Shown: positions 36 through 53,616, counted from the stretch's first letter. The stretch is DNA of 64,000 nt from Scyliorhinus canicula (GCF_902713615.1 NC_052158.1:13512546-13576545); one strand, 5' to 3'. A program made the numbers and translations. Notes: a model not told the origin generated them from the sequence alone.

Positions 36-87
36 GTGATTTCGAAAGGCCTCCTTCTCTTCCTAATTCTGTTCTCCTTGCGATGTG
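36..87 (+). CDS. Gene A candidate signal-peptide exon (reads (V)ISKGLLLFLILFSLRC, phase-1 donor); no in-frame ATG
   Basis: Hydrophobic frame ends at G87 followed by GTCAGT donor; splicing to 959 gives ...LLLFLILFSLRC-AAAIA-DVKVTQ, a good signal peptide. In-frame TGA at 30-32; ATGs at 20 and 29 are in another frame. Confidence 0.6.
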
Positions 88-958
88 GTCAGTTATGGAG
101 CCGACGTCACCAGAACTGTAGCCTGAATGTTATCAGATCCCACACCCTTTGCCCATTCCAGATTTTCAGCAATTCCTTGATAATAGGTGGAATGAGCCCT
201 GATAGCTGAAGTAGTATATGCGATTGCGTCAACATCAGTGTTACGCAGCGATGGATCATCCACTCAGCTTATCGCGTTGAAGATGGCTAGAAATTCATCC
301 ACGCTAACACTCACGTGCTGGATTCTTCGTTGTTGGAGATGGTGGACACTTATGGAGCTTCCTCCTACATTTAATTGTTTAAGTACCAACAAACAGGAAT
401 GGGTTTGGCAGGACTGCAGAGATGTTATGTGATCCGTTGGTTTTGGGTTGCTAATTATTATTAACACTTTGCTTTTTGTATTTGGCTTTCATGTGTTGTA
501 TCGACACCAGGTTGGTATCGGATCTTTAGGGCTGTCTGGTGCTGTCCCTGGCATGTTCTCCGCCACTTCTCATTAAATTGGTAACGGAATGCCAGGTCGT
601 TTCTGTGGATACCGGCAGTCCTTGCACATTAACAGTCCCTTGACCGACTCAGTGGGCGTCAAGGAAATGAGAAGTTCCATGTGCGACTTATCAGTGAAAT
701 TGGATAGGATGCTGATCCCCCGACATTGCACCTCAGGTTTAATGGCTCCAAGGGAAAAAAATAACTGTCCGCACCAAAATGGTTCATGGCAGGAAACTCT
801 GGTCATCTTGTCACGGACTTTCAGGGGATGTAAGTGGGTAGTCGTTGTTGGAATTCGAAATTAGTTGCATTTGAATTGTTTGCAAGGTGTCAGTACAAGT
901 AATCTGAAATGCGGAGTTGATTTCTCTAACAAAGATCATTGGTGTCTCTGTTTTACAG

Positions 959-1297
959 CTGCTGCTATTGCTGATGTCAAAGTAACTCAAAGTCCAGGAA
1001 ATATCGAAATAACCGAAGGGCAGGAGTTTCAAATCTCCTGCACGTTTACTCCGTTTAGCATCAAACTTTACGCAATCACCTGGTCCAAGGCAGTAATAGG
1101 TTCTCAAAACTGTAAAGTTACGAACACGTCTGAAGAATTTATTGGGCGAGTATTGTATAAACACGATAAAGTGTCAAAATCCAGTCAACTTATAGTCATG
1201 GACACAAAACAGAATGATTTTGGGATATATTATTGTGAAGTGCAAGTCATGAATGCTGGCAATGGAAGTGGAAAGGGCACACGGGTAACAGTCAACG
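959..1297 (+). CDS. Gene A Ig V-set exon, germline V-J joined, NKp30/NCR3-like
   Basis: Acceptor ttttacag at 951-958, donor GTACGT at 1298, phase 1-1, 339 bp. V motifs VTQSP, ISC, ITW, DFGIYYC and J-like GKGTRVTV; KVTNTSEEFIGRV and YYCEVQVMNAGNGSGKGTRVTV parallel human NKp30 EVRNGTPEFRGRL and YVCRVEVLGLGVGTGNGTRLVV (recalled). Confidence 0.9.
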
Positions 1298-2589
1298 GTA
1301 CGTGGCTATTCTGCTAATTTCTGGCTTTCTTTGCATCTATTCTTTCCAATAACGGATCATCCTACTTCCTCTTCCAACATCCATTCTGTAATTCCGAAAT
1401 AAGAGTCATGAAGAGCATTTATAAATATTGAATCTGTGTAGATTAATTCTCATTTAGTCGACTATAAACCTAATAATCTGCTTATTATGAACACTACAAA
1501 AGGATGAATTTCAGTGTTGAATCCATATTCATTTGGAGCATAGGTTTAAATGTGTAAATCGATTAATCATATTTGAAACTTCCTGAGAATTTGAATCTAT
1601 CTGTACAGATTGCCGTTTTAACACAATTTACCGTGTATGAATAATAGAGCCCAACTATTTTAGTTAACTTAATTCTCTCTGAATTGTATTCTACTTTGAA
1701 CCTAAGTTCAGTGAAATCCTCCAAAAACACAACAATACGTTACACCTGCATTCCGATAACACACAGCGGAAATATGCGTGCCCCGCCATACTACAATAAC
1801 CAATAGGCTTGTTGTTGAAACACCTAAACATACAACATAGGATCAGGAGGAGGACATTTAACCCTTTAAGGCTGCTCCGCCGTTCATTATGATCATAGCT
1901 GATCATCCAACTCAATAGCCTATTCCCACTTTCCCCCATATACCTTGATCCCATTCGTCCTAATTGCTATATCTAACTGCTTCTTCTGAAACCTACTGGC
2001 CGAAATATCGGGCAGAAGCAAGAACATCCGCTCCAATGAGTGGCGGAAATACCGCCCATCCCTCGTTGTTGAGCACCATAGAGCTTTCTGGCGTCAGGGC
2101 TGGTCGGAATCAAATGACGTAGTTTCCAGGGGACATTGCATCGCCACTAGTGAATCAACCCATTGGTTTTAATTCCTCAAACTCCATGGGCAAGGGATTC
2201 GCTGCAAGGGAACTTTGGGACGACTGAAGCCATCTCGATTGCCGTCACAAATACTATTTCATGACCGTTGTCTCAGTTGCTGGTAATTGTTTCAACTGAG
2301 TAAGACATTTTTCAATCTTGGTGCCTTATTTGACGACAAGTTTAGTTTTCGTTTGTACATTTGTGTTATCACCAAGATTGTTTATTTCTACCTCCTTTAT
2401 ATCCCGTTTAATCTACCTTAACTTCTCTTCCAATGAAATCCTCATCCATTTGTAAATTACCTGTCGATTTGATTATCCCAATTCATGCAATTATTCCTTC
2501 TGCAAAATCGCGTGTTCACCTGAAACATGAATTACTTTTCATAACTTGTCTTGCTCGCTATCTTATTCACCAATCATTCCAGAAAAATA

Positions 2590-4846
2590 GAAACCAAAGT
2601 TGGAAGGCAGAGGAAACGGGGGCCAGAGAAAAATTATATGTAAAGATGTTGAGAAGACAAGTCTCAAGTCACAGTATGTGAATACACGTATGATGCGCAA
2701 TATGGTAGAGGAATTTACTAAGCAAATTGGGACGCACAGGAATTATATTTTTGTAATTACGAAGATATGGCTGCACGGTGATCAAGACTGGGTATTGATT
2801 ATCCAATGGTATTCAATATTTATGAAAGACTGAAAAAAGGGAAAGGGGGGTGGTGTGATTATGTTAGTTTTGAATGATATCATTGCAATAGTGGGGTAAA
2901 AGCGACACAAGAAATGTAAGCCAACCACCGTTCACGAAAGAGGAGTCCTATAAAGCTGCCAGAAACAGAGCATATCTAAGGATTAGTAGAAGGTCGATAT
3001 TTTGTAAAGGAAGAAAACGAGATTAATTAAGAGAGGTAAATAGTGAATGGGAGTAAACTTTCAAGGAACATAACCGTGCCATTTTAAATATATTAACAGA
3101 AAAAGACACAGGAAGAGAAATGCAAGTCCTACGTTCCATAACAGGATACTTTATAACAGAAGAAAGGAAATGGCAGAGCAAATAAACAACAACTCTCCTT
3201 CTCTCTTCACGTAGGAAGAAAGAAATCACTTCCCAGAAACGCAAAGGAATCAAAGGTCTCGTGAGAAGGAGGGATTGGAGGAAAGTGTTATTACTAGAAA
3301 AATACTGTTGGGGAAATTAATGGGACTCTAAGCTGATAAATCAGCAGGACCTGATAATCTACATTCCGGGATACTACAGGTGGTGGCCATGGAAATAGGC
3401 CTTGCTTGTCGTCAAAAATCCTGTAGATTCTGGTACAGTCCCAACAGATTGTAGTGTCGCAAATGTAATCCTGCTATTTTGTTTAAATACTGCTAGGGTA
3501 AACAAGGAATTACAGACCGGTAATCCTGACCTGGCATCAGGAGCCGGGAAAATGTTTGAGTCTATTTTATAAAGGATGCAACAAAAGGACACTTCGAAAA
3601 TATCAAAATGATTAAACAACGTCAACATATATATATGATGTTTGACGAACATACTGTAGATGTTTGAGGATATAATTAGTAAGATACATAAGTATGAATC
3701 AATGGATGTGATGAATTTGGATTTTAAGAAGGGGTTTGACAAAGTCCCACAAAAGAGGTTAATATTCAAAATGAAAGCCCGCGGGGTTGAGGGTATTATA
3801 TTGGCACAGGTTAAAAAGTAGCAGTCAGGAAACAGAGGAGGAATAAATCAGTATTTTTCGAAACGACAGCCAGTGACGAGTGTGATGGCGCGGGGTTCAA
3901 TGCATGGCCCTAGTTATTCACAATATACATGAATGATTTGAATGAGGGAACCATAAATAATCTTTCCAATTTTGTTGATGACACATGTTCGTGCTAAGGA
4001 GGATACTAAGAGGGTCCAAAGTAATTTAGACAAGCTAAGTGAGTGGAAAATACGTGGCAGATGCAGCATTACGTCGATAAATGTGAAGTATCCACTTCAT
4101 ATGGAGAAGCAGAATGGCAAAGCATTATTTGAGCGCTGATAAATTGGGAAATGTTGAACTACAAATGCACCTGGGCGATCTAGTACATGAAACCATTCAA
4201 AACAAGCATAAAGGTGCAGGAAGCAGTTAGGAAACAACTAACATGTTGACCTTCATTGCAAGAGGACTTGAGTGCAGGAGCAAGAATGTATTACTGCAGC
4301 TGTACAGGGTTTTGGTGATACGACACCTAGAATGTGGTGTGCTGTTTTGGTATCGTTATCCAAGAACATAGTGGGAGTGCCCTGAACATTAACTGGACTG
4401 ATTCCTGGATTGGCAGGATAGCTGTATGAGGAGAGATTTGGGTCACGCGGTCGTTTTTCACTGGAATGTAGATGAATGAGAGTCGATATAATTGAAGCAT
4501 GTAAAAATTGAAAAAGAATTGGGCAGATTGGATACAGGGATGTTGTTTTCTCTGGTTGGCGGGTGTAGAACAAGGTGTCACAATCTCAGGATACGATTAA
4601 ACGATTTAGGACTGATATAACGAGATACGTTTTCTTTCAGAGGATGGTTAACATGTGGAATATCGACCACAGGAAGCTGTGGGGACAAAGTCACTGAATA
4701 TATTTAAGACGGAAATAGATATATATCTAGATTGTAGGGATGCCCACGGATATGGGGAGACAGCTGGATTATAGTGTTGGGATAGAGGACCGGCCATTAC
4801 CATGTTTAGGCTCGAATGGCCTAATCCTGCTGCTATGTTTATATGC
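2590..4846 (+). mobile_element. Old CR1-type LINE remnant in gene A intron 2
   Basis: Degenerate RT motifs (ggacctgataatctacattcc; gattttaagaaggggtttgacaaagtccc; tttgttgatgacaca) and CR1 3' end ctaatcctgctgctatgttt. Confidence 0.75.
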
Positions 4847-5468
4847 TCCATTAATAATTATTATCTTTATTATTGTCACAACCAGGCTTACATTAACACT
4901 GCAATGAAGTTAACGCCGTGCGAAGATGACAGAAACGTTCTTCTATCGTCGTTGCTCTTCTTCATGCTTGTCAAAGTCTATATGACTTTTTTGTTTTATT
5001 TCAAATCGATAACGATTAAAGGTGTAACCTTGACTTGGTGTTGATACGCAAATGTGCACGCACACGAATCTACTCATCGGCAGATCTATCAGAAATTCAA
5101 GACATGGATATGGAGTTATATTTCATATCACAGCTCTTTCGCCAGTTATCTCTTCGATCATTCCAAGATCATTGAATTAGGACTGATGTCGTGATTGTGC
5201 AACAGGGCGGACCGTAAATTTCCCTCAGGTGTGTGGATAACCCTACGCACAGTTTGTAACACGCACCCTCAGGTCGATTAATTCACACAATCACATGTAA
5301 CTCGGCAGAACGCAAAAGATCCCCAACAAATAAAATGTAACTGAAAGGTAAACTAAATGCTTAAAAAAAGTCGTTTTAATAATTTTATAATGACCCAAGG
5401 AGTTGGTGTTCAGTTCATTAAAACAATCGAGTGGATGTCATTATTACCAATCGTTTCTTAATCCCCAG

Positions 5469-5603
5469 GTGTGAACGACAGCAAGAAGAAAGTGTCTGCT
5501 GCAAAGCGCAAATTGACCGCTTTATCTTCATCGCTGGTGTTGATTATATTGCTGCTGCTCCTAATCACAATTCTTATTGTTTTGCGCCGCAGAAAGAGTC
5601 AAG
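5469..5603 (+). CDS. Gene A stalk/transmembrane exon (GVNDSKKKVSAAKRKLTALSSSLVLIILLLLLITILIVLRRRKSQ)
   Basis: Acceptor atccccag, donor GTAACT at 5604, 135 bp phase 1-1, uncharged ~23-aa TM followed by RRRK stop-transfer; same length as gene B TM exon. Confidence 0.88.
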
Positions 5604-7100
5604 GTAACTGTTATATGCATTATGGTGGCGTTAAGTGAACGGATATATTGAGCGTTAAAAGCATTATTGGATGGAAACGCGTGAGTTCTGCTAGGTATTA
5701 ACTGCCTCGTATCACAAAGAAAGAGAGAGTTTGTCTCATTCCAGCCAAATCGTCTGTGACCATGACAGAGATATAACTTTATACTGGAGTTTCCGGAACT
5801 GATGACTTCTTAAGCCCACTTTCTAATAATGAAATGCGTTTAAAGCGCAATGCACTGTCAGGAGGTTGACAAGGCAAGCTGCAGAAGCAAGAATGAAATC
5901 ACGATAAGAACATTTATTTCCGGGCTGTTGTCTCATTGATCAATATTGGCTGTGGCACGAGGTGGGGTGGGGGCGCGGGATTCACTTGTTCGTTCGCGTT
6001 GTATTGATGGTTGATCGTTCACTTTCAGATTAAAATCTCCTAGCCTAAAACGGACTTTCTAGAGTCCGATTCATCCCCTTCCAAATACAGCGCCTGCGTC
6101 ATTGGAGCGCCTCTTCTGCAGCGTCAGACTGTGTGTTCAAAGTTGTGGAGTGGGGTTTGAGCTCCAAAGCTTCTTACTCGGAGGCAAATATGATAACATT
6201 GACAAATGGCCCAAGGAGGCAGGTAGCCGAATATGGCACAAGCTGACAGCAGTGCAAGCCTTGCAGACAGCCTCCAAAATAAGCAGCAAATAATTAGTTT
6301 ACACATATGCCTAATGTTTGGCCATCAGCTTACGGAGCACTGCTGTTCTAATTATATACATACATAAAGCTGAGTGTTTGTAGAATAACTTGCAGTGAAG
6401 CGCCATAATACCTTTAGAGCTAATAAGTAGATGGTAACTGATTAGCCAATATTTAGTTGAGGAATGCGCTGAAATTGTGTTTCTTTCCTGTTTTATATAT
6501 ACTTTTATCGGATGCGGCTGTCACCTGTAAACCCAGCATTTGTTGCTAATAGGGATTGCCTTTGGGGAGGTGGTAACGAACCAATATCGTCCATCGCCTT
6601 TCCCCCACCTGTTTGGTCCAACTGAACAGATTAGCAGGCCACTTCCGGTCATAGTCCAACACATTGCTGTGGGTCCGCGGCCATCTGAGGAGAATATCGA
6701 GTAAGACCGATCCCAGGAGACATTATTGCACCGGACGGGGCTTGGCCCCCGTCGGTGGTTTCATGGCCATCATTATTGAGACAAGCTTTCAATTCCGGAA
6801 TTATTTAATAATTCAATTTGTATTCTACCAGCTGCCTCGTTGGAATGTGGACTTTTGTCCCGAGTAATAAACCCTGGCTGTGGACTAAAGGCCAGTATAA
6901 TGTCCTATTGTCCAGCATTCCGGCCAGGTTGCCTGTAGCTCACGTGATAGCACAAAGGTTGGCCATTCAAGTCCGACTACATATTTTACATTTTGGCTTC
7001 CTACCTTTATTCGGCGATAAATTCATGTAAATGATAAGCTGATTGCTTCATTCCATTTACTTTATTCACCGCATATATCTTTATCTCAAACATTTTCCAG

Positions 7101-7132
7101 ATAGAACATCAAGAACTGGAAATGAAGAACAG
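7101..7132 (+). CDS. Gene A short cytoplasmic exon (DRTSRTGNEEQ)
   Basis: Acceptor cattttccag, donor GTAAGA at 7133, 32 bp, phase 1 to 0, joins the TM exon to the ITIM exon in frame. Confidence 0.8.
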
Positions 7133-7655
7133 GTAAGAATGATAGACCACGTTAGAGGAGACATATTTATTGTTTTAACGAACTGTTACTCTTGATGAAA
7201 GTCAGGGATGAAATGTCAACACATAAAAGGCATTGGGTTAAAACGCAGATTGCGAGTTCCGTAGCCCAATCATCTCAATTATCATTCTAAGTGGATTTCA
7301 GAAAATGTTCGTTCTAAAAGATGCTGCATCCTCTTTATAATGTCCAGTGTCTGGTCCCCTCCAAGTGTGTATTTTAAAAGAGAAAATTAACACGTAAACA
7401 CATTATTAATCGATAATCACATGTTCTTCCGATCGCTAATTAGTCCCTTTACTCCAAGTACATTCCCGCGATATTTTTAAATTGCGGAACAAGAAGCGTT
7501 ATCAGCACTGAGGAGGTTAGTCTTGCAGTTCAAGTGAACGTGGTTGGAGCGTGGTGCAATGAGTGGTTTGTGGTAGATGAAAATGATTTCAGTGAAGTGT
7601 GAGTCAATGCCATTCGATTGGAAATTGGAGGAGACGCCTACAAGCTTAAAAGCAG

Positions 7656-7957
7656 GGTGGTACGGTAGCACAGTGGTTAGCACTGTTGCTTCACAGCGCC
7701 AGGGACCTGGTTTCGGTTCCCGCTAGGGACACTCTGTGCGAAACAAGCATGTTCTCCCCCTGTTTGCGTGTGTTTCCTCCAGGTGCTCCGGTTTCCTCCC
7801 ACAAGTCCGGAAAGACGTGCTGTTAGGTGGATTGGATATTCTGAATTTTCCTTCTGTGTACCCGAACAAGCGCTGGAATGTGGCGACTAGGGGCTTTCCA
7901 CCGTAATTTCATTGCCGTGTTAATGTAAGCCAACTTGTGAGAAGAAAGATTATTATT
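7656..7957 (+). mobile_element. tRNA-derived V-SINE/HE1-related SINE
   Basis: A/B-box head ggtagcacagtggttagc...ggttcccg, V-domain gtttcctccaggtgctccggtttcctcccaca, simple-repeat tail. Confidence 0.8.
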
Positions 7958-10900
7958 TTTAATAGTGCAGTTTTTGAAGGCTAAATATTTGGAGTTATCG
8001 ACCCCAGAAAGCTTTGGAGGCTCGGTTATTTAGTATGTCAAAGCAGAGATCGTTAGATTCTGCGCATTAAAGGCATCAAGGGATGTGGGGATAATGCGAG
8101 AAAATGGCTCTGAAGTAGATCAATATTAATCTAATTGAATGGCGCATCAGGCTCTAGTGGCCGAATGTTCTATTCCTGCAAATATTTCCTAAGTTTGCAT
8201 GCAAGGACAGATCTAAAGTGCTTAGCTCTAGTATAAAAGTATGAAAAGGCAGGTGATCCAGCACTTGCAATATTGAGTACTGTAAATAGAGACGTACAAT
8301 ACTAAAAGCAGACAGTTGTATTAAACTCGCGTGACATACAACATACCGAGTGGAAAAAAGCAAACAAACGCCAATGTCAGGTGTCAATGACCCAACACAG
8401 CACAAAGCCCGCAGGAGTATGGAAAATGCAGGGTGAAATTAAAAACAAAGGAATACACATTGAGAACAACACTACGAAGTACAGAGGCCATAGTGACTTG
8501 CAAGTTAACGGATATGGACGTCTGAAGTTGAGAGGAGAAGGTAACAAGGCTATGCTACTTTGCGTCTCTTGTATAGCTGCATTAACTTTGAAAGCAGGAA
8601 AGTCATGCTGCATAAAGCAATGATTATGCTACAGCTAGAGAACTGCGCCAGTTCTGGTCGCTATATTTCGGAAGACGGAAAGAATAACTGGAAATGCGTG
8701 GAGGAGATTTACAAGAATAGTTCCAGCGATGAATGAATACAGCTACAGTGTTAGGTTGCAGAATTTGGGGCTGTTCTTCTTGGAGCAATGGTGACTGTGC
8801 GGACTTGCTAGGTTTAGATCAGAGGGACAAAAGAAAAGCCTGTCCCTGTCAGCTGATGGTACAATGACTTGTTGGGGGGGGGGGGGGGGGCGGGGGGGGG
8901 CAGGTTTTAAGTTTTGGGCGAGAGAGGAACAAGGGGCTAGAAAGCAAAACTTCCTTACGCAGTGAGTGGTTGCGATCTAGAAATTGTGAGGAAAGGAAAT
9001 AACAAGGCCAATTATAGACCGAAAAGTTAACATGCGCCTGGAGATAAAAGACATGGACATGGATGATAATGCACACTTTCCACCTGTATTTATCTGAGAA
9101 ATAATGTAGACAATGGAGGTAAGGAGGCAAACCCGAACAATGCCATGATATGAACGTAGTGAGGAAGAGTAACCTATTTATCGGACACGTCACCAGGCCC
9201 ATGTGAAACGTAACCCTGGGTTATAAAGAACACCAGTAACAACAAGAGGCTGGAAAATCATTTTCCAGCATTGAATAGCTATCGGAGCGATGCTGTAGAA
9301 GAAAAACACTGTTAGCATGCACAGTTATTTCAAAAGGAAGGATGGGATGGACCAGTTACTTCCAGAAAACTAAGCCTAACCACACTGCTTCGCAAATTAC
9401 TCGAAACATTTCTGAGAGATGATATATATCCTCATTTAAGAAAGGCTGGGATCAATAAAGGATTGTTAACGTGGACTTCCAGTCTCTCTACACTTCTAAC
9501 GCCCAGGCCGGCCTGAGGGTATCCTTGATTTGGATTTATTTGGATTTGGGTTTATTGTCACGTGTACCGAGGTACCGTTAAAAGTATTGTGCTGTGTACA
9601 GTCCAGACAGCTCGTTTCATATATGGAAATCATTGGACATACAATAAATACACAATGTAAATACGTAGAGATAGACATCGAGTGAAGCATCCGGAGTGCA
9701 GAGCTACTCAGTAGAGAAGATGCGTGAAGAGATCAGTTCAACTAATTCCATCCAGCACCACCCCCTCTGCTTGACTGATATTCTCTCCTGCTATCGCCCT
9801 GAAATGGAAAAACTTCAACAAAATTGTTTTTAAAATTCACCCTTCTTCAGTTCTGACGTTCAGTCACGGTGGCCTGCCAGCTACAGCAATCCTCAAACAG
9901 TAGTGACGGGTTTCAAATTAAAGCCCGTTAAAGAGCAATAAGCCCCTACTTATATATACAACTGGAATCTTGTGAGAAGTGCAAGGGAACACCACTGTGT
10001 CACCACCCCCTGCAGGTGAGAGGGGATAGCCTATCGGTAGGAGGTCAGAATCTGTCATATTTCAGGCCTTTGAATAGCTCATTGGCTGCAAATGGCAAGG
10101 CTCCTGCTTTCCAATGTCGCATAGAAGAGATCCTAGATTCAGATATCGCTAATGGCCGCATGCAATGAACTTACTTCACTAACTCTGACAGACACGAAAG
10201 TGTCCCTCTGCCTCTTCATTAATATGTCCCTGTGCCACACTGCTACTAGTCTTAACGTGGGTTCTCCTGGTCTTCCGTAACCAAGGGTTAAAGAATGAAT
10301 GTAAAATGCTATAGGATATAGCATGAATAAATTGTAAACAACAATTTCTTAAACCTGGGGTAGATCATTCTTTCAAATTTCTCCACTTGCTAATAATATG
10401 TCCCATAGAATGTCTGTTTTTCCCATTATTTGTCATTTTCGAATTGAATTCATAAGGTTTCATGTTGTATTCAGTTCACTAATACACGGCAGCTCATGAA
10501 GTCTTTCTATATATGTACAGTCGGTTAAAGTAAACCCTAAGTAGATGGACGTTTTTCAAGTAGTTCTATGTAAGAAGTGTGCAGAGACTATTTAGGATTT
10601 ACTTTGTGATTTGCAGCACTGGCGCTGTTCTTTGTATGTAATAATAATAATAATAATAATCTTGATTGTCACAAGTAGCCTTACATTACCACTGCAATGA
10701 AGTTACTGTGAAAATCCCCTAGTCATCACATTCCGGTTCCTGTTCGGGTACACGGAGGGAGAATTTAGAATGTCCAAATTACCTTTTGTTACTTTTCTGA
10801 GGAAACCTGAGCACCCGGAGGTAACCCACACAGACGCAGGGAGAGCGTGCAGACTCTGCACAGTCGCCGTAATCCAATAATAGCACGGTGGAAACCTATG

Positions 10901-11515
10901 GAAAATGTTAGAAAGTTAGTCATAGTTCCTTATGGAATCAAAAAGTAGTAGAGCACGAACTTTTTAAGAATGCTTCGAACTAATGAAAATCAGTCCAAGG
11001 TCAAACGACTGATGAATGAAAACATCAAAGCACACTAAGTCTCAATTTCTGTCAAGGGCATTTGAATAGCATAGGAACATAGGAAACGAGTAGCCCATGT
11101 AGCACCTCGGGTCTGCCCCGCCATTCAATTATATCATGGCTGATCTGTGGCCCAACTCCCTATACCTGCTCTTGGGCCATGTCCCTGCTGACCAAAAATC
11201 TATCGATCTCAGATGTAACATTAACAGCTGTTCTCGCTTCAACTGTTGTTGGTGGGAGAGATTTCCAAACTTCTATCAACCTCGAGTGAAGACGTCCTTC
11301 CTAACATTTGATCTGAACGCTCTGGCCCTAATTTGTTGAAAATTTCAAATAGTTTAAAAATTCCATGTTGTAGGGCAGTGTACAGTAGAACGATGAATGC
11401 AAAAACAAATTCCTGCCGTGTGACGGTAACACAGGAATAGCACCCTTTTAATAAGCAACTGCAGCGTCAACTGTTCCAGGTCTTTTGTTCATTTTCAAAT
11501 TTCGTTTCGTTTCAG

Positions 11516-11692
11516 GTGGAAACACCGAACACTGTTGTTTATGCTAACCTGCGCATCGACAAATCCAAAAGGCATCGTCCGGGAAATCACATCAACGATC
11601 AAATTGCGGGGCCCCCCTTGCGGGCATATCACCGGGACGAAAACACAGTTGTATACGCAGCCATCCGTCCACCTCGTGGAAGACCGAATTGA
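11516..11692 (+). CDS. Gene A terminal coding exon with two ITIMs (VVYANL, VVYAAI)
   Basis: Acceptor ttcgtttcgtttcag, phase 0; VETPNTVVYANLRIDKSKRHRPGNHINDQIAGPPLRAYHRDENTVVYAAIRPPRGRPN-TGA; both motifs fit the (I/V/L/S)xYxx(L/V/I) ITIM consensus. Confidence 0.88.
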   Translation: METPNTVVYANLRIDKSKRHRPGNHINDQIAGPPLRAYHRDENTVVYAAIRPPRGRPN

Positions 11693-12292: not shown

Positions 12293-12298
12293 AATAAA
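12293..12298 (+). promoter_or_regulatory. Candidate polyadenylation signal of gene A
   Basis: AATAAA about 600 nt downstream of the stop at 11692; not verified. Confidence 0.3.
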
Positions 12299-33299: not shown

Positions 33300-33494
33300 C
33301 ATCCTTTCTCAAATTATGAATTAATTATTTTTGGTTCCAAGATTCTGCTGGTCTGTATCTTCACAGGCCTTCTCATCTGCAAAACAGTTTGTTGGAGAGT
33401 TTCACACAGCAAAGAAAGAACAAACCAAATGAGTGGCCCGAGTCCTACTGAATGTCAATTGAGAAGGTGGGCACTAATTGGTAAAAATAAGTAG
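33300..33494 (+). CDS. Orphan TM/short-tail exon with intramembrane Lys (HPFSNYELIIFGSKILLVCIFTGLLICKTVCWR...), activating-receptor type; possibly pseudogenic
   Basis: Open frame with hydrophobic segment containing K (AAG 33339-33341). The strong phase-1 acceptor at 33261 runs into TAG at 33297-33299; only a phase-0 acceptor at 33299 avoids it. No upstream + strand V exon found. Confidence 0.4.
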   Translation, partial: HPFSNYELIIFGSKILLVCIFTGLLICKTVCWRVSHSKERTNQMSGPSPTECQLRRWALIGKNK

Positions 33495-41929: not shown

Positions 41930-42760
41930 CTAAGAGAATGGACCAACATTTGGCAGATGGAGTTTAATGTGAGTAAGCGTGAGGTTATCCATTTTGGCAG
42001 AAACAATATAAAGGTAAATAATTATCGAAATGTAAAGTAGATTCAATATGCGTCCGGGCAGAAGGACCTGGGTGTCTTTATCATGAATCGCAGAAAGTCG
42101 GTACTCAGGTAAAGTATGTAATTAAAAAGACAAGTTGAACATTAGCGTTTATTGCAAAAGGACTGGAGTATAAAAGTAGAGAAATGTTGCAACTATATAG
42201 GGTGTTGGTGAGACCACGTTTGGAGTATTGTACCCACTTTTGGCCTCCTTATTTGAGGAAGGGTGTGGTGGTATTGGAGGTAGTTCAGAGGAGCTTCATC
42301 AGATTGATTCCAGGGATGAAAGGGTTGACATATGAGGAGAGATTAAACAATTTCGACTTATACTCGCTGGAGTTTAAAAGGATGAGAGGGGATCGGTGTG
42401 AGGTAGATAAAATACTAAAAGAGATTGTGAAAGTAAACGTAAACCAAATGTTCTCCCTGGAAGGGCAATCTAGAACGAGAGGTTTCAGATTAGGTTGCGG
42501 GGCAGTAGATTTAGACTTCTCGCTGAGGATGGTGAATTTTTGGAAGTCTCTGCCCCATCGTGCGAGGGAATCTGAGTCATTAAATGGTTTGAAGAAGGAG
42601 ATAGATATAGTTCTGATTTTTTTAAACAACGTGTTATTGGGCTATGGGGGACAGGTAGAGAGGTGGATTCGAGACCAGAAAGAGCAAACGTGATCTGATT
42701 GAATGATGGAGCAGGTTCGAAGGGCCGAATTGCCTACTTCTGCTCCTAATTCCTGTGTTA
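41930..42760 (+). mobile_element. CR1 LINE 3' remnant
   Basis: ORF 42184-42693 MLQLYRVLVRPRLEYCTHFWPPYLRK...YEERLNNFDLYSLEFKRMRGD. Confidence 0.85.
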
Positions 42761-43316: not shown

Positions 43317-44183
43317 ATTATGTAGTATTTTGTAGGAGTGCCTGGTTCGTCTTCTTCAAACCAGAAGAAGTCTGGGCCTCTTCTTCAAAATTGCGCTCAC
43401 ATACTGTAATGCATCAGCAAAGACAGTGGGAAAATCTTAATGCTGACGCAGAGGTGGCCTTTGTACATGGTGGAAGCTTTGCCCGGTGCAGAAGCCAATT
43501 AAGACACTAAAATTGCCACTTAAGGATAGTCTAACAGCTTCACCGCCGCCAGTATTGAATCAGTTGCGGGCAACTATTCCCACTGGAGGGACTGGATAAT
43601 AGCAAGGGGGAGCAAGCCGCAGGAAGACACGAGCCGGCCCTTCACAAAGATATCACTTGCGACTCTCCATTCCACCTTGACTATCCCCCAGAGTTCCTCT
43701 ACCCACTCAGCTTGCTTTCAGTGAGGGGCCCGCCCATCATCATTATCGGGCCCCCTGTTCTTGGTGCTGGCAAGATGGCTCTCCATGAAGTTACACCCAA
43801 AGAAGTGTGACTAAAAATGAATAAAGATTTTGTGCTTTCATTAACGAATTGTAGAAAAAGCCAAGGTTGAAAGGATTACGTCTGTTACTCAATAGAAAAA
43901 AGGATGCAATACAGTGTATGTTTCCCTATCTCAGCTATTTAAAGACACTGCATGATGTCTGAATGTAGCAAATCACAATTAAAGGATTTCATTGCACTCA
44001 TTCCCGTATAAGCCTCCCCGAAATGGCGCCGGAATGTGGCGACTATGGGCTTTTCACAGTAACTTCATTTGAAGCCTACTTGTGACAATAAGCGATTTTA
44101 ATTTCATTTTCCTTTCATATTTGGTTTGTCACATTGGCATCGTCTTGCTTTTATGTCAAATCAGCATCCGCTGCGATTTCAGT

Positions 44184-46489: not shown

Positions 46490-46670
46490 ATCACGTGCGT
46501 GCGCACGCACACATGAACCCTCACAAAAACAAAAACACACACAAACGCGCACAGGAACAAGTACGCACACAGGAGCGCAGGCAAACAAACTCACAAAAAC
46601 ACACACACACAGAAATAAATATACACTGACAGATAGGCACACACACGCAATCACACATACAAACACCGCA
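46490..46670 (+). repeat. Degenerate (CA)n-rich microsatellite directly after the donor of gene B exon 46741
   Basis: acacacacaaacgcgcacag...acacacacacag; GT-rich on the gene B sense strand. Confidence 0.7.
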
Positions 46671-46740
46671 GATTCTTTATCTTAAATACAAGCCGCTGGC
46701 AATCTCTTGAGTAAACCAAATAAAGATGGAGATCCCTTAC

Positions 46741-46775
46741 CTGTTTCTTTTGTGCAATCGAAAGAGGAACATTCT
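46741..46775 (-). CDS. Gene B short cytoplasmic exon (ENVPLSIAQKKQ)
   Basis: Acceptor ccttcttattctgcag, donor CAG/GTAAGG, 35 bp phase 1 to 0, positional equivalent of gene A exon 7101-7132. Confidence 0.75.
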
Positions 46776-48094
46776 CTGCAGAATAAGAAGGTATTTAGCA
46801 AATGTGTACCTGGCTCTAATTTTTCATCTTGTGTAAAGGGTTAGAATGAATCATGACATTATTACAAATCGACAAGGAACTGTTGATCGGCTTACCTGAC
46901 CAGTAAAGCGTAAGCTGTAAATAAGAAAATGATTAAATGTAATTGTGGTTAATATTGTTATTTATAGTGATGATTAATATGGCAAAACAATGATTGACTA
47001 CAATACAAACTCAAAATTATGGAAATCCTCCAAATGCACATGTGCCGCTGCTGAGTCGGACTTACTTTAAATGTGCTTGTTCTTATAAATGGTGAATTAA
47101 CAATTGGATCTTAGTCATAATATCGGTGTTCCCAATGTATTTTCGTTTATTTTTTTAATCTTACTTTTTGTCTTTTCATTTTCCGCTTGCACATGCTGCT
47201 TGGAACACGTTACAGTATTAAACAAGATTAACTTATTAATACAGCTTATATTTCTCTGAAAAGTAAAAAAGTACCTTTGCATATTAATACTACTACAGTA
47301 GTTACTGGACTAGCAATCTAGAGACCCAGGCTAATTCTATGCGGGAATTCAAATCCCACCATGGCAGCTCAGTTGCTGCTACAATTTAAACTGAGCTAAT
47401 AATAAGTCTGGAGTGAAAGCTAGTTTCAGTAATGGTGATCATGAAACCTAATGTCGATTGGTGTAAGACCCCATCTGGTTCACTGATGCACTTTACGGAA
47501 GAAACTCCATCGCCCTTGCCCTGCTTGGGTTACACCTGAGTCCAGACCCGCAATAATATGGCTGACTCTTAACTGCCCACAGAAATGGTCAAGCAGTTGC
47601 CAGGTGATGATGTACGGGCAACAAATGCTGGTCATGCGATCTCATAAAATAATACATGTTTTACAAATGACTCATTCGAAAATTGCGTGCTGTTGCAACG
47701 CAGAAACAAACATTTCAACCCTACAACTTCACGCTTGTTAGTTATGCCCCACAAAGACCTCTTCAAACCCTTCTTCATCTAACCCCATCAACGCTTTTTG
47801 ATATTTCTTTGCATCTCATGTGTTTCTCTAGTTTCACCTTAAACGTTTCTATGCTAGTCGAATCAATTACATTTTGTGGCAATAAGTTTCAGATCCTAAC
47901 CGCACCCTGAGTAAAGCGGTTTCACATGATTTCACGATTTAATTTATTAGTGACCATTTTATATTAATTGCCCGCAATTCTGATTCGTACCATCAATAGC
48001 CTATGCTACATCTTTATATTTTCACTTATCAATAGCTTTGACAATATTTTTTCTTTATTCTTTCATGAGATTTGACCGTCAGAATTTACAGACT

Positions 48095-48395
48095 TAATAG
48101 TGGAGAAGGAGGCCATTCGGCATGGGCCCTTAGAAACAACACCCTAAAGCCCACACCTCTATTCCCGCAACCCAGTAACACCACCGAACCTTTTTGGACA
48201 GTGCGGCCAATTTAGCATGGCCAATGCATATAGCCTACACATCTTTGGACTGTGGGAGGAAACTGGAACACCCAGAGGAAACCCATACAGACACGGCGAG
48301 AATGTGTAGACTCCGCACAGACAGTGACTCAAGCCGGGAAACGAACCTGGAACCCTGGAGCTGTGAAGCAACAGTTTTAACCACTGTGCTGCCCC
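48095..48395 (-). mobile_element. HE1-type SINE
   Basis: Reverse-strand SINE consensus. Confidence 0.78.
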
Positions 48396-49330
48396 ATTTA
48401 CGTCGCTGGCACTTACAATCATCCCAATTGGTCTTGAACTGAGAGGCGTGTTAGGTCACTTCAGATGGGAGTTAGGAATCAGCAATTATGGTTCTGAGGT
48501 TGTGTTTAGCGTAGACCGTGAGGAAGGCAGATTTCCTTCCCGGAAAGACGTAAGTGAACCAAATGGGTTTTATGAGAATTGGTGATACTTTCGTAGTTAT
48601 CATCACTTGGAGTACATTTTTATTTCGGAATTATTCATTACATTTTAATTCCACCAGATGCCTTGATAGGAGATCGTCCCGAGTATTAATTTTGGTCTTT
48701 GAATTACTAGATTGCTGTCATCATCATGATGCGACCGTCTGCCATGACTTTATAAATCAGCTCCTGCCTCTTCAATTATTCCGACGCGGAATAAGTACTG
48801 AAGAGGAGTGTTTAGCTTAGATAGCCAAATAGTGTACTTCCGACCAGCAACAACAGCGTGGAATCGATTCCACGCACAGCTGAGGAGGACTTATGACCTG
48901 CCTCTTCATCCTACCTCTGAGAGTGGAAGACAATGACAAAAGCTCACTGGAAAAACAAACTGTACAGGAGATGCCTGAGGATGGAGAATCAACAGACAAT
49001 GAGCCAGGGAGCTGTCTTTTGACACATCACTCAAGTAATGGAATGACATAACTTCATCTGAGTAAATATTATTCATTGCGCCTTCTACAAAGGCTATGTG
49101 CCTTTGTTTTTTAAAAATATGGAGACCAGAATTGTTCGCACACTCCAACTATGAAAACCATGTGTGTCATACATGCTATATTCACTAGAAAATGCAAAAT
49201 CTATTGAGCATTCACTTCCAATTTGCGAAAATGTGCATTGCACTGTAATTATATTTTTGCACTGTGAAGCATGAGACAGGGTAAAATTAATATTTCATGG
49301 CATGGATATAATTTTCAATATTTTAAATAC

Positions 49331-49465
49331 CTTTGTTACGTCGAGTAAGAACTATTATCACCACCAGCAGTGCCAGAGTAACAAGCAACGCGACACCCCC
49401 TGCCACTGCAATCCACATCCAGTCGAACGTAAAGTTATTTAAAGGACGTGATTTGTCGCAAACAT
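49331..49465 (-). CDS. Gene B stalk/transmembrane exon (HVCDKSRPLNNFTFDWMWIAVAGGVALLVTLALLVVIIVLTRRNK)
   Basis: Acceptor ttctttccttctgcag, donor GTATTT, 135 bp phase 1-1, uncharged TM followed by RRNK. Confidence 0.88.
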
Positions 49466-49793
49466 CTGCAGAAGGAAAGAAAACGTAAGAGATTTCTTCA
49501 TAAATTCTCATCGAAGGAACAACAGCAAAGAAAGCAGCGCTATAAGGGGACAGGTTTAGAAATAAATAGGGAGACAAGCACGTGGGGAGAAAGGCAAAAA
49601 CATACAGGTAAGATGGGCAAGGGGAGAGAGTGAAATTGAAATACGCATGCGCAGAAAGTTTGGAAAGGTTCAAAAAACACAGACAGATAAAGGGTTACAC
49701 GAAAGCAGAGTAACTAAAGCATGGAGGAAAGAATGAGGGGACGTTTTAAATCAGGGGACAATACTGCAATGCCGTATGGTTAGGTTAACATAC

Positions 49794-50120
49794 GTTCTAC
49801 GGTGACCAAGGTTCCATTGCCTGTCTGCTTCTGTTTCCCCAGCATTTCAATCTCACAGTAATATATACCAGAGTCGCATTCAGTCATGTGCTTAATGTGG
49901 ATAGATGCATCCTTCCTCGACTTGAAAGCCTTCTGGTCAGCTTTTATAATTCTTTGCTTGTACCTTGGAGAATCAAAGTCAATGGGACTGTCATCCCTTC
50001 TCCAGCTGTACGTCCCCAAGCCGTCTAAACGAAAACTGCAATTCAAGGTCACATTGCCGCCTTGCAATAAATGAATTGAAGCGGGCGTTTGCATCACGCG
50101 AGAAATAACGGCCTCCATAC
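49794..50120 (-). CDS. Gene B Ig V-set exon, germline V-J joined, NKp30/NCR3-like
   Basis: Acceptor tttctttgtgcaccactag, donor GTATGT, 327 bp phase 1-1; VMQTP, GGNVTLNCSF, YSW, ASIHI, DSGIYYCEIEMLG, TGNGTLVTVE (NKp30: TGNGTRLVVE). Confidence 0.9.
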
Positions 50121-51006
50121 CTAGTGGTGCACAAAGAAACAGTATTAATTAACTAATCTAACTAACACAGTATTGCCAAATAGGCATGGTCAATCTGGTT
50201 TAAAGCTCGCACTCTTGCCTGCGACTAAAATGGTTGTAAGTTCAAAGTTTGCAAATGCAAATATTATTATATGAAGAGTTTAATGCGGTAAGTAAGCGAA
50301 TGCCTCCACCCCCTCCACCCCCTCTGCACCCCCCCCCCCCCCCACCCCCTCCACCAAAGGAGAAGAAACGTGCACCCGGTGCAACAGCGAATATTTGTTC
50401 AGTGAAAAAATACCCCAAGTCAACTTGCGAAGTGTTGAGATCATTATAATTGAAGAATCTTAGTATCACCAAAGCATTTGGTGCACTGGTCTATCGAGCA
50501 ACAAATATTATAGTTCAGTTGTCATTCACTGGCCGTGAAATACTTTGAGAAGTTTTTAGTTGCAGGAAATGCAACCTCAGATTATACTTTCATTGAATTC
50601 AACTGTACGTTGTCATTCAATTCGGAATAAATTATTATAAGTATGATACAAGCATAGGGGAGAAAGCATTGGAGAAAGAAATAAAGAATGAAAGGTGTAG
50701 AGAGAAAATAATGGAAAGAAAACAAAAAAGACAATTTTGAGCCCCTCCTCATTAATATTAGAAGTAATAAATCAATTCAATACATATTTACCCTTCCGGC
50801 GTCTTTGATTTTCATATTAGGGAATTATAAGAAAATGCGTTTCCTTAATGCAGAGAGCCATAATATGACATGAGATGCTGGCATTCGCTATTAATATATT
50901 GCGTTCGTGAAACTATCGATAGAGTAAATCATTGAGCACTATCCACATCATAAATTCAGAGAAACTAAGCATTGCCTCAAATGTATTCAGGTATATATAT
51001 ATATTG

Positions 51007-51352
51007 GTGGGCAGCACGATAGCACAGGAGGTAGCACAGTTGCTTCACAGCTCCAGTGCCCCAGGTTCGAATCCCGGCTTGGGTCACTGTCTGTGTGGAG
51101 TCTACACGTTCTTCCAGTGCCTGCTTGGGTTTCCTCCTGGTGCTCCAGTTTCCTCCCACAGTCCAAAGATGCGCAGGTTGGGTGGATTGTCCATGTTAAA
51201 ATTGCTCTTAATGTCCAAAATGGTGAAGTGGGGTTGCTGGGTTACAGGGAAAGGGCGGTGGAGTGGGCTCTTAAGTAGGGTAGGGTGCTCTTTCCAAGGG
51301 CCGGTGCAGGCTTGAAGGGCCAAATGGCCTCCTTCTGCACTGTAAATTCTAC
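51007..51352 (+). mobile_element. HE1-type SINE in gene B intron 1
   Basis: gggcagcacgatagcac head through tgcactgtaaattcta 3' end. Confidence 0.82.
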
Positions 51353-52234
51353 AATATATATATATATACAATTATACCATTTCCACACTATGCCCATAAA
51401 TAACCGAATTTCATTTACATCCTAGATTTAGAGATTACGATCTCGAGCGCTATCCCTATTTGGCATCATTATTTTCTTCCCTCAGCTGCTCACCTCAAAG
51501 AAAAATTATCTATAAATATGTCGGATGTGGCCGCTAAAAATGCGATCATTCTATAAGAGTCTTCATTTGTAGTTTTCACCTTAATTCCCTAGATTAAGGT
51601 ATTCATATGTGGTTGAACAGCGGATGAAATTTATGGATTTTAGGCTGTATGTCATATTATCAAAGCAATATAATGAACATTATGATGAATTCAATTAACC
51701 ATCAAACCACTTTTCTTTCTGATCCGTACCCGAAATTTGTGACTATAATGTTTCTGTCTCCACGAAAGATTTTCTTCCATGATAAGCAACAAAGTATTGT
51801 AGTCACTGTTCTCAATTGTACATTTCACTGCATGTTTAGTTAAATAAAGAAATGTCTTGATGTTAACCTTAAATATTAGAGTAGAAGATTATTAGAAAGA
51901 GTAACTCTGTAACTTCCAGTTAATTTTATCATTTACAATAATCATCTGTTGAAAGTATGTATCAATTTGGCTGTAATCCAAGAGGCAAAACAAATAATGC
52001 TTGATTGTCTAGTTTAAAACTATATCTTGCCCGGTGAGTTATATTGTGGGTTCTGCGTGTGTCACTGTTTCCACCAGCATGGCCAGACATCAGAAGAAGT
52101 ACAGAGAAGACCTGCACGTTTAATCCCTGAATTGCACAGAATTACTTTTGAGGATCTATCGATAACTATTGATAAGACTATCTAAAAAGGTAAAATGATT
52201 TGAAGTTATTTTTTCAAATAAATTTAGATTACCC

Positions 52235-52630
52235 AATTATTTTTTCCAATTAAGGGGCAATTTAGCGTGGCCAATCCACCTAGAACATAGAACAGTACAG
52301 CACAGAACAGGCCCTTCAGCCCTCAATGTTGTGCCGAGCCATGATCACCCTACTCAAACCCACGTATCCACCCTATACCCGTAACCCAACAACCCCCCCC
52401 CCTTAACCTTACTTTAATTAGGACACTACGGGCAATTTAGCATGGCCAATCCACCTAACCCGCACATCTTTGGACTGTGGGAGGGCACATTTTTGGGTTG
52501 TGGGGGTGAAACCCACAGAAACACGGGGACAATGCGCAAACTCCACACGGGCAGTGACCCAGAGCCGGGATCGAACCTGGGACCTCAGCGCCGTGAGGCG
52601 GTTGTGCTAACCACTAGGCCACCGTGCTGC
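52235..52630 (-). mobile_element. Nested SINEs (CR1-tailed SINE fragment inserted into another V-SINE)
   Basis: gccaatccaccta occurs twice, with an inserted tagaacatagaacagtacag...ggactgtgggag block between. Confidence 0.65.
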
Positions 52631-53555
52631 CTTTGGTTTGAAGTTATAAAATAACTGGGCAAATTGGAGTCAGTTTGTCTACGGTTGAAAAAAAATGAAA
52701 ATCGCTTATTGGCACGAGTAGGCTTCAATGAAGTTACTGTGAAAAGCCCCTAGTCTCCACATTCCGGCGCCTGTCCGGGGAGGCTGGTACGGGAATGTAG
52801 GATTTAAGGTTGATTCATTTTCAAATGAAAATAGCAGAACAATTGTAAATGCGAGAAGAATTTAGTTACTCCGGGTGGCATTTTACTGGCAAATGTAGTG
52901 GAAGGAAAAGACGTCTTGAACTTCAAGGAGGCTCTTTTCAACAATTAAGGATTGAGGATTATCAGAAATGCACATCGGTAATATTGTGGATTGAATGGCT
53001 AAATGGTTCAGCAGTTACTCGTTGGATGGATCCTTCATTTGTGGTGACCACAAACACACTTTGCAAAAATGCTGACATTTGATTTTATAGTTATGCGCTG
53101 GTAACACGTCAAGGAATTTCTTTAGTGAATGACCAGGAAACACATCAGTGAAATGTAACTGCATGGTTTAATCATTTGCCACAATAAACATTCCAAACAC
53201 ATTATTATAGATTTACAACGGTACCGGGTGAAACATGCCAACTCATTCACAGGCTAATGTTCAGGTCAGCTCAATACCAGGCGTCTGTATTTGAGTACTT
53301 TCACTGGCAATGCTTTGCAAAACTTAAATTTGAATAAAAACTTGACACTAAACATAAATTGGCGGTTGTGTATCATTCTAAACATTCTATTATTGCAACT
53401 CATGTTTTTTTCTTCCTCTGCTTAGACAATATAGAAAGGTATTAATGCCTACTTCTCTAGTGTTTTAAAAATGCACGCCATCGTTTACTTAGTCTGATTA
53501 ATGGTCACGACGTTCTTAGAATATTTAAACAATCAGAGCGTGACTATTCACTTAC

Positions 53556-53616
53556 CGGTTGTACAACTTGAAATCAGGAGAAAAAGAGAGGTTGTCGCCC
53601 ACCGTTCTGCCGCCAT
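53556..53616 (-). CDS. Gene B signal-peptide exon (MAAERWATTSLFLLISSCTT)
   Basis: ATG at 53616 in strong Kozak context (gtaacaATGG), donor G/GTAAGT at 53555, phase 1; weaker upstream in-frame ATG at 53631. Confidence 0.85.

Follow-up and report, generated by a model that had tools for sequence, protein, structure and literature searches.

Two non-rearranging V-J receptor genes of the NKp30 (NCR3)-like group in the catshark Scyliorhinus canicula

Exon structure of genes A and B

The analyzed window, a stretch of 64,000 nt from the genome of Scyliorhinus canicula, contains two intact receptor genes with germline-joined V-J domains, which are oriented tail-to-tail and located about 27 kb apart (Table 1). 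Two intact single-V genes facing each other had been proposed in a first-pass annotation of this DNA, and the arrangement is borne out by the match of the gene A exons to the annotated protein P0001 and by the RNA junctions of gene B.

Table 1. Positions of receptor exons and other features in the 64,000-nt window
Feature	Position	Strand	Evidence or remark
Gene A (exons inside the window)	959-11692	+	
Gene A, V-J exon, 339 nt, phase 1 to 1	959-1297	+	Pfam V-set, E 2.8e-10; 100% match to P0001
Gene A, stalk and TM exon, 135 nt	5469-5603	+	100% match to P0001 residues 127-171; AG/GT
Gene A, cytoplasmic exon, 32 nt, ends CAG (DRTSRTGNEEQ)	7101-7132	+	Matches P0001; AG/GT
Gene A, last coding exon, two ITIMs and stop codon	11516-11692	+	100% match to P0001 residues 182-240
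PIF/Harbinger-like DNA transposon, G+C-rich	14800-21500		Between genes A and B, belongs to neither
Myb/SANT ORF (transposon)	15905-16300	+	
Tandem repeats (transposon)	16704-17016 and 20677-21044		
DDE_Tnp_4 ORF (transposon)	19488-20324	-	
Candidate Lys-bearing stretch IIFGSKILLVCIFTGLLIC	33324-33380	+	Judged a chance feature
Gene B (coding span)	53616-38451	-	
Gene B, exon 1, coding part, leader MAAERWATTSLFLLISSCTTG	53556-53616	-	RNA junction 53553/6 to 50117/20, four runs
Gene B, V-J exon, 327 nt	49794-50120	-	Pfam V-set, E 2.9e-13; RNA junctions on both sides
Gene B, stalk and TM exon, 135 nt	49331-49465	-	RNA junction between 49465 and 49794
Gene B, 19-nt micro-exon, encodes AYALLV	46896-46914	-	Pattern search; AG/GT sites
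Gene B, 35-nt exon, ends CAG, read (R)ECSSFDCTKET	46741-46775	-	Loose end at 41416 (run X6) reads this exon; AG/GT
Gene B, 44-nt exon PPQRKKRRNPAPHQ	41367-41410	-	RNA junction 41367 to 38537, three runs
Gene B, last coding exon QDDSYLHCHGNEAKVKNKRPLPPRRNMQ, stop at 38453-38451	38451-38537	-	RNA contigs cover 38300-38537

Gene A is already present in the NCBI annotation of S. canicula as "natural cytotoxicity triggering receptor 3-like" (P0001). This protein is 99% identical to the gene A query, and the four exons in the window correspond exactly to its residues 15 to 240, with AG/GT splice sites throughout. The leader, previously assigned to position 36, has to be sought elsewhere: the window does not contain the annotated leader MYPDTIIGVLLIS, which lies about 2.27 kb before the window start (annotated CDS span of 13,963 bp). 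The V-J exon ends with the J-like motif GKGTRVTV, the anchor LTALSSSLVLIILLLLLITILIVL is uncharged, and a motif scan of the tail revealed the two ITIMs VVYANL (189) and VVYAAI (227). Gene A accordingly combines an uncharged anchor with motifs of the form (S/I/V/L)xYxx(I/V/L), the hallmarks of an ITIM receptor, and judged by its sequence it is the inhibitory member postulated for this locus. Orthologue-like proteins covering 96 to 100% of the query are found in S. torazame, Mustelus, Carcharodon, Cetorhinus, and Heterodontus; the anchors of all six proteins displayed are uncharged. Both tail tyrosine motifs are retained as canonical ITIMs in most shark orthologues; P0173 has VAYADL, and P0174 lacks the first tyrosine. 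The RNA runs contain at most 0.15 of the words of the gene A V exon.

Gene B comprises seven exons and is backed by spliced RNA contigs, with lengths of 978 nt in run X1 and 924 nt in run X3 and with fragments in runs X2 and X6. They document the junctions 53553/6 to 50117/20, 49794 to 49465, and 41367 to 38537; the RNA thereby supports five elements of the gene B model predicted in the first pass, namely the leader, the V, TM, and 35-bp exons, and the last exon starting at 38537. The leader starts with the ATG at 53616 and resembles that of Pristis P0008, and the untranslated regions extend to at least 53699 on the 5' side and to at least 38300 on the 3' side. The V-J exon ends with the J-like motif GNGTLVTV, and the subsequent TM exon, whose anchor WMWIAVAGGVALLVTLALLVVIIVL is uncharged, exhibits 56 to 59% identity to the equivalent exon in Pristis and Pristiophorus proteins. 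In the 978-nt contig, 98 nt separate the TM exon from the last exon, which is the sum of 19, 35, and 44 nt. The 19-nt exon was deduced from this arithmetic, from its conservation (AYALLVR is kept in P0005, P0008, and P0012), and from a mixed loose end in run X6, which suggests that the exon is sometimes skipped. The frame of the 35-nt exon matches RECTSFDSAKE of Pristis, and the last exon shares 52% identity with the C-terminal part of proteins from Pristis and Narcine. The assembled CDS of 708 nt is open and encodes 235 amino acids; over its full length the product is 51% identical to P0156 of Pristis pectinata (E 8e-91).

A simpler five-exon model of gene B, in which the TM exon is followed directly by the 35-nt and the last exon, maintains the reading frame but translates the 35-nt exon as ENVPLSIAQKKQ. 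It was ruled out, since the frame conserved in rays is ECSSFDCTKET and the long contigs contain 98 nt instead of 35 nt at this site; the wrong frame of the earlier reading arose because the 19-nt and 44-nt exons had been missed. A tyrosine exon encoding VHYLAI at 48837 (minus strand) is not used by the RNA contigs. The "same architecture" previously ascribed to both genes applies to the V exon, the 135-bp TM exon, and the 32- or 35-bp exon ending with CAG, but not to the 19-nt and 44-nt exons, which raise the number in gene B from five to seven. The tail of gene A carries two ITIMs, and that of gene B contains neither an ITIM nor an ITAM.

Relationship of the V-J domains to NKp30

Both genes encode a germline-joined V-J domain (GxGTxLxV) of the Pfam V-set type in a single exon. 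In the sequence comparison of gene B with solved structures, human NKp30 was the best full-length single-domain match (3.5e-10; profile search, 8e-9); multi-Ig chains, e.g., contactin-1, score equally well or better overall in both searches, over summed or short stretches only. The predicted fold of gene B (pLDDT 93) points in the same direction, with NKp30 on ranks 1 to 4 and an E value of 1e-9 versus 1e-7 for the next family, i.e., a 100-fold better match. In the phylogenetic tree of the V domains, gene B belongs to the clade comprising all sequences named NCR3 (support of 87/90), including those of mammals, Xenopus, sturgeon, newt, and elephant shark as well as the published nurse-shark NCR3. 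The earlier classification as an NKp30-like receptor is supported for gene B by sequence and predicted fold and agrees with its position in this tree.

For gene A, the same label stands by virtue of the NCBI name, and the affiliation is less direct. Its lineage, the A-type clade (96/88), groups next to the NCR3 clade as its sister (91/82), and NITR and an Ig-heavy-chain-like V branch separately from both; the tree contains few outgroups, i.e., NITR, a single Ig-like V, and a single teleost protein. The domain itself is no nearer to NKp30 than to antibody VH or to the V domain of shark IgNAR: in the sequence search against solved structures, NKp30 (7.5e-8) ranks below shark V-NAR (3.2e-10) and below antibody fragments, and the lead of NKp30 in the comparison of predicted folds is nominal (1.1e-10 versus 2.5-4e-10 for VH and IgNAR). 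Look-ups in the ESM Atlas returned generic V-set neighbors only. These rankings, the exclusion of the A-type clade from the clade with every NCR3-named sequence, and an additional match of the A-type profile to zebrafish NITR 1l (E 9e-7) are what one would expect if gene A stood outside the true NCR3/NKp30 family, as a separate shark inhibitory V-J lineage whose sole common trait with NKp30, NITR, and antigen receptors is the type of domain. Such a placement is nevertheless doubtful in view of the sister-group position next to NCR3, of the NCR3-like label that NCBI gives to gene A and its white-shark orthologue, and of the AU test, which failed to reject a single clade of A-type and B-type sequences (p 0.19).

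Overall, with a probability of about 80%, the window harbors two separate non-rearranging V-J IgSF receptor genes of the NKp30 (NCR3)-like group of cartilaginous fishes, and an activating-type or dead member cannot be demonstrated here. Both genes belong to a family previously reported in sharks, that of the NKp30 (NCR3)-like receptors. With 24% identity and unrelated tails, gene B is, by sequence comparison, not a close paralogue of gene A; it is instead a lineage with its own tail that has been kept between sharks and rays.

A second A-type V domain of S. canicula (P0002), located on an unplaced contig of 51.8 kb, is 80% identical to that of gene A, and the differences are found mostly in loop regions. 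The unplaced contig, the almost identical leader and first framework, and the intron read-through GTWLFC in common with gene A would suit a divergent allele on an uncollapsed haplotype contig, in which case gene A would be highly polymorphic and not recently duplicated. Alleles that differ in 20% of the amino acids of a single exon would be very divergent, and this explanation is less probable still than a position of gene A outside the NCR3 family.

Search for further receptor sequences in the window

A decayed V exon had been proposed between the two genes. The whole window was therefore searched with six-frame fragments against family HMMs (built from 5 sequences and from 151 V domains), by tblastn with 166 relatives, by relaxed blastn with both V exons, and by scans for the motifs D.G.Y.C, YYC, and G.GT.V.V. 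Only the two intact V exons were returned, all further HMM and tblastn matches in the window having E values of at least 0.4. The best frameshift-tolerant join, a collinear pair at 43317-43081 and 43060-42902 (minus strand), attains only 4.1 bits, and the weak candidates at 8306-8620 (plus), 6524-6760 (minus), and 32912-33049 (plus) were rejected as well.

The TM exon with a lysine that had been claimed, for which no coordinates were given, fared no better. Hydrophobicity scans allowing one charge, blastp-short searches with every relative's TM segment, and a query with the Lys-anchor exon of S. torazame P0004 were applied to the whole window; no sequence resembling a charged TM exon of the family, be it of the P0004 type or another, was found. 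The sole strong candidate, the stretch listed in Table 1, has no similarity to family TM exons and is equaled or surpassed in 38% of composition-matched shuffles.

A further reading of the locus is a paired NK-receptor locus, in which an inhibitory gene, an activating remnant represented by an orphan Lys TM exon, and a decayed V exon would reflect birth-and-death evolution like that of KIR, Ly49, and NITR. In its favor are the ITIMs of gene A, by sequence a bona fide ITIM receptor, the second A-type V domain P0002, and the S. torazame protein P0004, which is nested in the A-type clade, shares 60% identity with the V domain of gene A, and has a short tail and the Lys anchor LILMGVKLTGF. In the window itself the reading is not supported, because there is no decayed V exon and the Lys stretch is at chance level; neither of the proposed relics rises above chance. 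No pseudogene relic was detected in the window by HMM, tblastn, or blastn, nor was an activating member with a charged anchor, a short tail, and a similar ectodomain, a form represented only by P0004 from the genome of another species. The low identity of genes A and B and their unrelated tails also speak against a paired locus, and the retention of the whole B-type tail in ray and sawfish indicates slow evolution and not a rapid turnover. The claim that this window combines an activating/inhibitory pair with relics cannot be upheld, and a paired locus of this kind is very improbable.

Tail motifs and comparison with known receptor systems

Gene A belongs to a shark lineage of predicted inhibitory receptors, in which a single V-J domain on a short stalk is joined to an uncharged anchor and to a tail containing two ITIMs. 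From the established biology of these motifs, phosphorylation is expected to recruit SHP-type phosphatases, which would dampen the cell. The gene B lineage is older, different from that of gene A, and common to sharks and rays, with the more NKp30-like domain of the two. Its putative tail of 59 residues, built from the 19-, 35-, and 44-nt exons, is shared with Narcine P0012 and Pristiophorus P0005 and features a conserved membrane-proximal AYALLV (YxxL), LHCH, and a basic proline-rich end KRPLPPRR that fits PxxPxR; these three motifs are kept in sawfish and electric ray and partly in sawshark. Gene B probably signals, in an activating or an inhibitory direction, or traffics via these motifs. 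The tyrosine of DSYLHC is replaced by histidine in Narcine and is therefore probably not essential in the tail.

A more far-reaching proposal is tentative and is rated below even odds. B-type receptors may be a distinct NKp30 branch of sharks and rays that signals by a micro-exon tail (AYALLV, LHCH, and an SH3-type end) without a charged anchor, ITIM, or ITAM, and in which transcripts with and without the 19-nt exon would differ in the reading frame of the tail. In addition, a true paired system may exist in the A-type lineage of catsharks, composed of an ITIM form and a Lys-anchored form such as P0004, with the activating partner encoded outside the window.

Shark genes of the NCR3 (NKp30) family have reportedly been described by Kinlein et al. 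2021 (Immunogenetics 73:333) and Flajnik et al. 2012 (Immunogenetics 64:571). Like genes A and B, they encode one V-J domain that does not rearrange and occupies a single exon, with a TM exon and short tail exons further downstream. The published nurse-shark NCR3 (P0119, QTT61901.1), located in a neighboring clade, is 30% identical to gene B over 208 residues (E 1.5e-23) and shares the membrane-proximal motif NKA..L. Human NKp30 (NCR3; PDB 3NOI, 3PV6, and 6YJP), with about 30% identity, combines a V-type domain with a J-like GxGTxLxV strand, as does gene B. The anchors of both catshark genes are uncharged, and their tails carry ITIMs in gene A and a proline-rich end in gene B; the human receptor, in contrast, has an arginine in its anchor and signals via CD3-zeta/FcR-gamma. 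Since several non-mammalian NCR3-named relatives also lack the anchor charge and have ITIM-like tails, the charged anchor defines the mammalian gene and not the wider family.

An expansion of NCR3/XMIV in Xenopus is said to be the subject of Ohta et al. 2006 (J Immunol 176:3674). There, as in the shark, the gene has grown into a family, and the NCR3-named Xenopus tropicalis proteins P0018 and P0107 are among the relatives of gene B in the same tree clade; the Xenopus copies form a tight clade of their own, and some have two V domains, unlike the catshark genes. With respect to NITR, KIR, and Ly49 clusters, gene A resembles the inhibitory arm in its V-type ectodomain and ITIMs, the A-type profile gives a weak match to zebrafish NITR 1l, and a Lys-anchored A-type relative occurs in S. 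torazame. Unlike in these clusters, neither an activating partner nor a pseudogene was found in the catshark window; NITRs possess an I domain in addition to the V domain and take an outside position in the tree.

To our knowledge, NKp30 is the sole natural-killer receptor that can be traced through all lineages of jawed vertebrates, and its V-J domain, which does not rearrange, is relevant to the origin of antigen receptors. Exact catshark gene models are therefore useful for comparative work on the NKp30 family; the present ones contribute an ITIM-bearing lineage and a shark and ray lineage with a micro-exon tail, i.e., with exons that are prone to be missed by gene predictors and unaided readers. 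The general picture is unchanged, as the NKp30 family, its shark expansion, and ITIM-bearing relatives outside mammals are already on record.

No MHC gene is present in the 64,000-nt window. The DNA separating genes A and B is transposon-rich, and the GC content of the PIF/Harbinger-like region at 14800-21500 is 0.50 to 0.61.

Placement of the two genes in the NCR3-like family

Genes A and B are further members of the already known shark NCR3-like family, to which the current analysis adds, as modest extensions, a seven-exon correction to the gene B model and the finding that the tail of this gene is conserved in rays. Kinlein et al. in 2021 reportedly described a shark NCR3 family with several divergent subtypes and linkage to the MHC. 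Eight nurse-shark NCR3 subtypes are available in GenBank as MT914154-MT914161. Outside mammals, NCR3-like proteins with ITIMs are common. Gene A has already been publicly annotated, since a protein search with the first V-type ORF of the window returned P0001, a 240-residue S. canicula protein (99% identity) named "natural cytotoxicity triggering receptor 3-like" at NCBI.

Among solved structures, the best full-length single-domain sequence match of gene B is NKp30 (E 3.5e-10 with the sequence alone and 8e-9 with a four-sequence profile); contactin-1 and like multi-Ig chains equal or beat it overall, over summed or short stretches only. The top four fold matches of the AlphaFold model (pLDDT 93) are NKp30 (E 1e-9; TM about 0.8), with SIRP-alpha, PD-L1, and TCR lying 100-fold behind. 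In a library of 1.8 billion proteins, the nearest relatives of gene B are cartilaginous-fish proteins, followed by NCR3-named sequences from Xenopus, newt, sturgeon, elephant shark, a mammal, and nurse shark (QTT61901.1). The maximum-likelihood tree of 47 V domains places the B-type clade (93/83), i.e., the V-domain lineage of gene B, within the clade of every NCR3-named sequence (87/90), while the corresponding A-type clade (96/88) is the sister (91/82) of the clade with all NCR3-named sequences; zebrafish NITR and an Ig-like V fall outside both. The description of both genes as NKp30-like in the first-pass annotation holds, with gene B falling in the NCR3 clade and gene A in its sister clade. 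The gene A domain is about equally similar to NKp30, antibody VH, and shark IgNAR V, and the two genes are 24% identical to each other. The union of A-type and B-type domains in one clade was not rejected by the AU test (p 0.19), and the order of the deep branches is therefore beyond these data.

Gene structures, transcripts, and tails

In RNA contigs from four sequencing runs, 53553/6 is spliced to 50117/20 and 49794 to 49465, the minus-strand introns being bounded by GT..AG. This confirms the leader ATG originally placed at 53616, the V-J exon, and the 135-nt TM exon, and provides, for gene B, the spliced transcripts that had been named as a check. A 978-nt contig from run X1 continues for 336 nt past the TM exon; its final 238 nt map to 38300-38537, and 98 nt separate the TM exon, at contig position 642, from the last exon, at 741. 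This stretch is accounted for exactly by three exons of 19, 35, and 44 nt. The earlier five-exon model had correctly included the 35-nt exon, but not in the frame ECSSFDCTKET that is conserved in Pristis and Narcine, and it lacked the 19- and 44-nt exons. The assembled CDS of 708 nt is open and encodes a 235-residue protein with 51% end-to-end identity to a 236-residue protein of Pristis pectinata (E 8e-91).

Features located in the window
Feature	Position	Strand	Basis or remark
Gene A V-J exon	959-1297	+	P0001 mapping, AG/GT sites
Gene A stalk/TM exon, 135 nt	5469-5603	+	P0001 mapping, AG/GT sites
Gene A 32-nt exon, CAG at end	7101-7132	+	P0001 mapping, AG/GT sites
Gene A last coding exon	11516-11692	+	P0001 mapping, AG/GT sites
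PIF/Harbinger-like DNA transposon	14800-21500		Between genes A and B; G+C-rich, 0.50-0.61
Transposon Myb/SANT ORF	15905-16300	+	ORF in PIF/Harbinger-like element
Transposon tandem repeat, 45-nt x 7	16704-17016		
Transposon DDE_Tnp_4 ORF	19488-20324	-	ORF in PIF/Harbinger-like element
Transposon proline-codon repeat, 21-nt x 17	20677-21044		
Gene B 44-nt exon	41410-41367	-	AG/GT; junction 41367/38537
ORF related to LINE reverse-transcriptase fragments	42184-42693	+	Without Pfam match
Gene B 35-nt exon	46775-46741	-	AG/GT; seen in first-pass annotation
Gene B 19-nt exon	46914-46896	-	Found via AYALLV encoded in relatives; AG/GT
Gene B TM exon, 135 nt	49465-49331	-	RNA contig junction
Gene B V-J exon	50120-49794	-	RNA contig junctions
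Gene B leader	ATG at 53616	-	RNA contig junction
LINE reverse-transcriptase fragments	57856-59765	-	RVT_1 on 58270-58734

The 19-nt exon seems to be skipped in a minority of transcripts, as seen from a mixed loose end at 49331 in RNA run X6. Its omission with retention of the 44-nt exon would change the frame of the tail, and such skipping, if real, would result in a different, tyrosine-free tail ending in ...VMVMKPK. At the last exon, the acceptor is a NAGNAG tandem (38535-38540, minus strand; aaaag/cag/GAC), of which the contigs take the upstream site, adding one Gln. Repeats in the gene B introns at 48100-48500, 50900-51500, 52100-52900, and 43900-44100 reach a summed RNA word depth of 10^4 to 10^5, with many heterogeneous joints at their copies, and are probably abundant transcribed SINE/LINE families outside the gene proper.

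The exons of gene A were set by mapping P0001 onto the window with a check of splice sites, and the four-exon translation corresponds to P0001 residues 15-240 with AG/GT sites throughout. Its annotated leader MYPDTIIGVLLIS is absent from the window; the assembly gives the CDS a span of 13,963 bp, and the ATG therefore lies ~2.27 kb before base 1, which displaces the leader formerly proposed at 36. Words of the gene A V exon are rare among the indexed RNA runs (share of <=0.15), and the case for its transcription rests on the NCBI model and conservation.

Both membrane anchors are uncharged. The tail of gene A contains two canonical ITIMs, VVYANL and VVYAAI, and a profile search recovered orthologue-like proteins from S. 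torazame, Mustelus asterias, Carcharodon, Cetorhinus, and Heterodontus (96-100% of the protein covered), most of which keep both ITIM positions; the anchor is uncharged in all six whose sequence was examined. A motif scan found no ITIM, ITSM, or ITAM in the tail of gene B, whose conserved elements comprise NKAYALLVRE (YxxL) next to the membrane, LHCH, and KRPLPPRR, a basic proline-rich end that fits PxxPxR. Narcine has His in place of the DSYLHC tyrosine, which is therefore unlikely to be essential. The motif "NKA(Y/C/I)..L" directly follows the anchor in gene B, in the published nurse-shark NCR3 (P0119), and, with P0085 and P0139 among the bearers, in a sister group made up of skate, sawfish, and S. 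torazame proteins.

The gene structures, motifs, conservation, and splicing of gene B were directly observed; the signaling that follows is proposed. Established ITIM biology suggests that gene A encodes an inhibitory receptor, which would recruit SHP-type phosphatases upon tyrosine phosphorylation. Gene B most likely signals or is trafficked via its YxxL and proline-rich motifs; such signaling may be either activating or inhibitory.

Intergenic DNA and the paired-receptor question

Genes A and B are indeed arranged tail to tail, as first described, with stops at 11692 and 38451. The proposal that the window itself harbors a paired-receptor locus was not sustained: neither an activating partner nor a relic was found in it, and the lineage of gene B, which is shared with rays and evolves slowly, is no recent duplicate. 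A decayed V exon had been reported without coordinates, but no third V exon was detected when the whole window was searched with two family HMMs, with 166 relatives by tblastn, by blastn at relaxed settings, and for sequence motifs (no E better than about 0.4). Of the frameshift-tolerant candidates, the best, at 43.3-42.9 kb on the minus strand, was rejected at 4.1 bits. The Lys-bearing TM exon, likewise reported without coordinates, fared no better: nothing in the window resembles a charged-anchor exon of the family type, including the Lys anchor of the S. torazame protein P0004. The sole strongly hydrophobic Lys-bearing stretch (33324-33380, plus strand) is without homology and was equalled in 38% of local shuffles.

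At the family level, a real hint of a paired system comes from P0004, in which an A-type V domain (60% identity), nested in the A-type clade, is joined to LILMGVKLTGF, an anchor with a Lys, followed by a short tail. The anchor motif "GVKL" recurs in P0159, an NCR3-like protein of Pristiophorus, and both proteins are candidate activating counterparts. Within S. canicula, the A-type protein P0002, encoded on an unplaced 51.8-kb contig, has a V domain 80% identical to that of gene A, with the differences concentrated in CDR-like loops. The two have a near-identical leader and a common intron read-through, GTWLFC, and P0002 may represent either a paralogue of gene A or a divergent haplotype.
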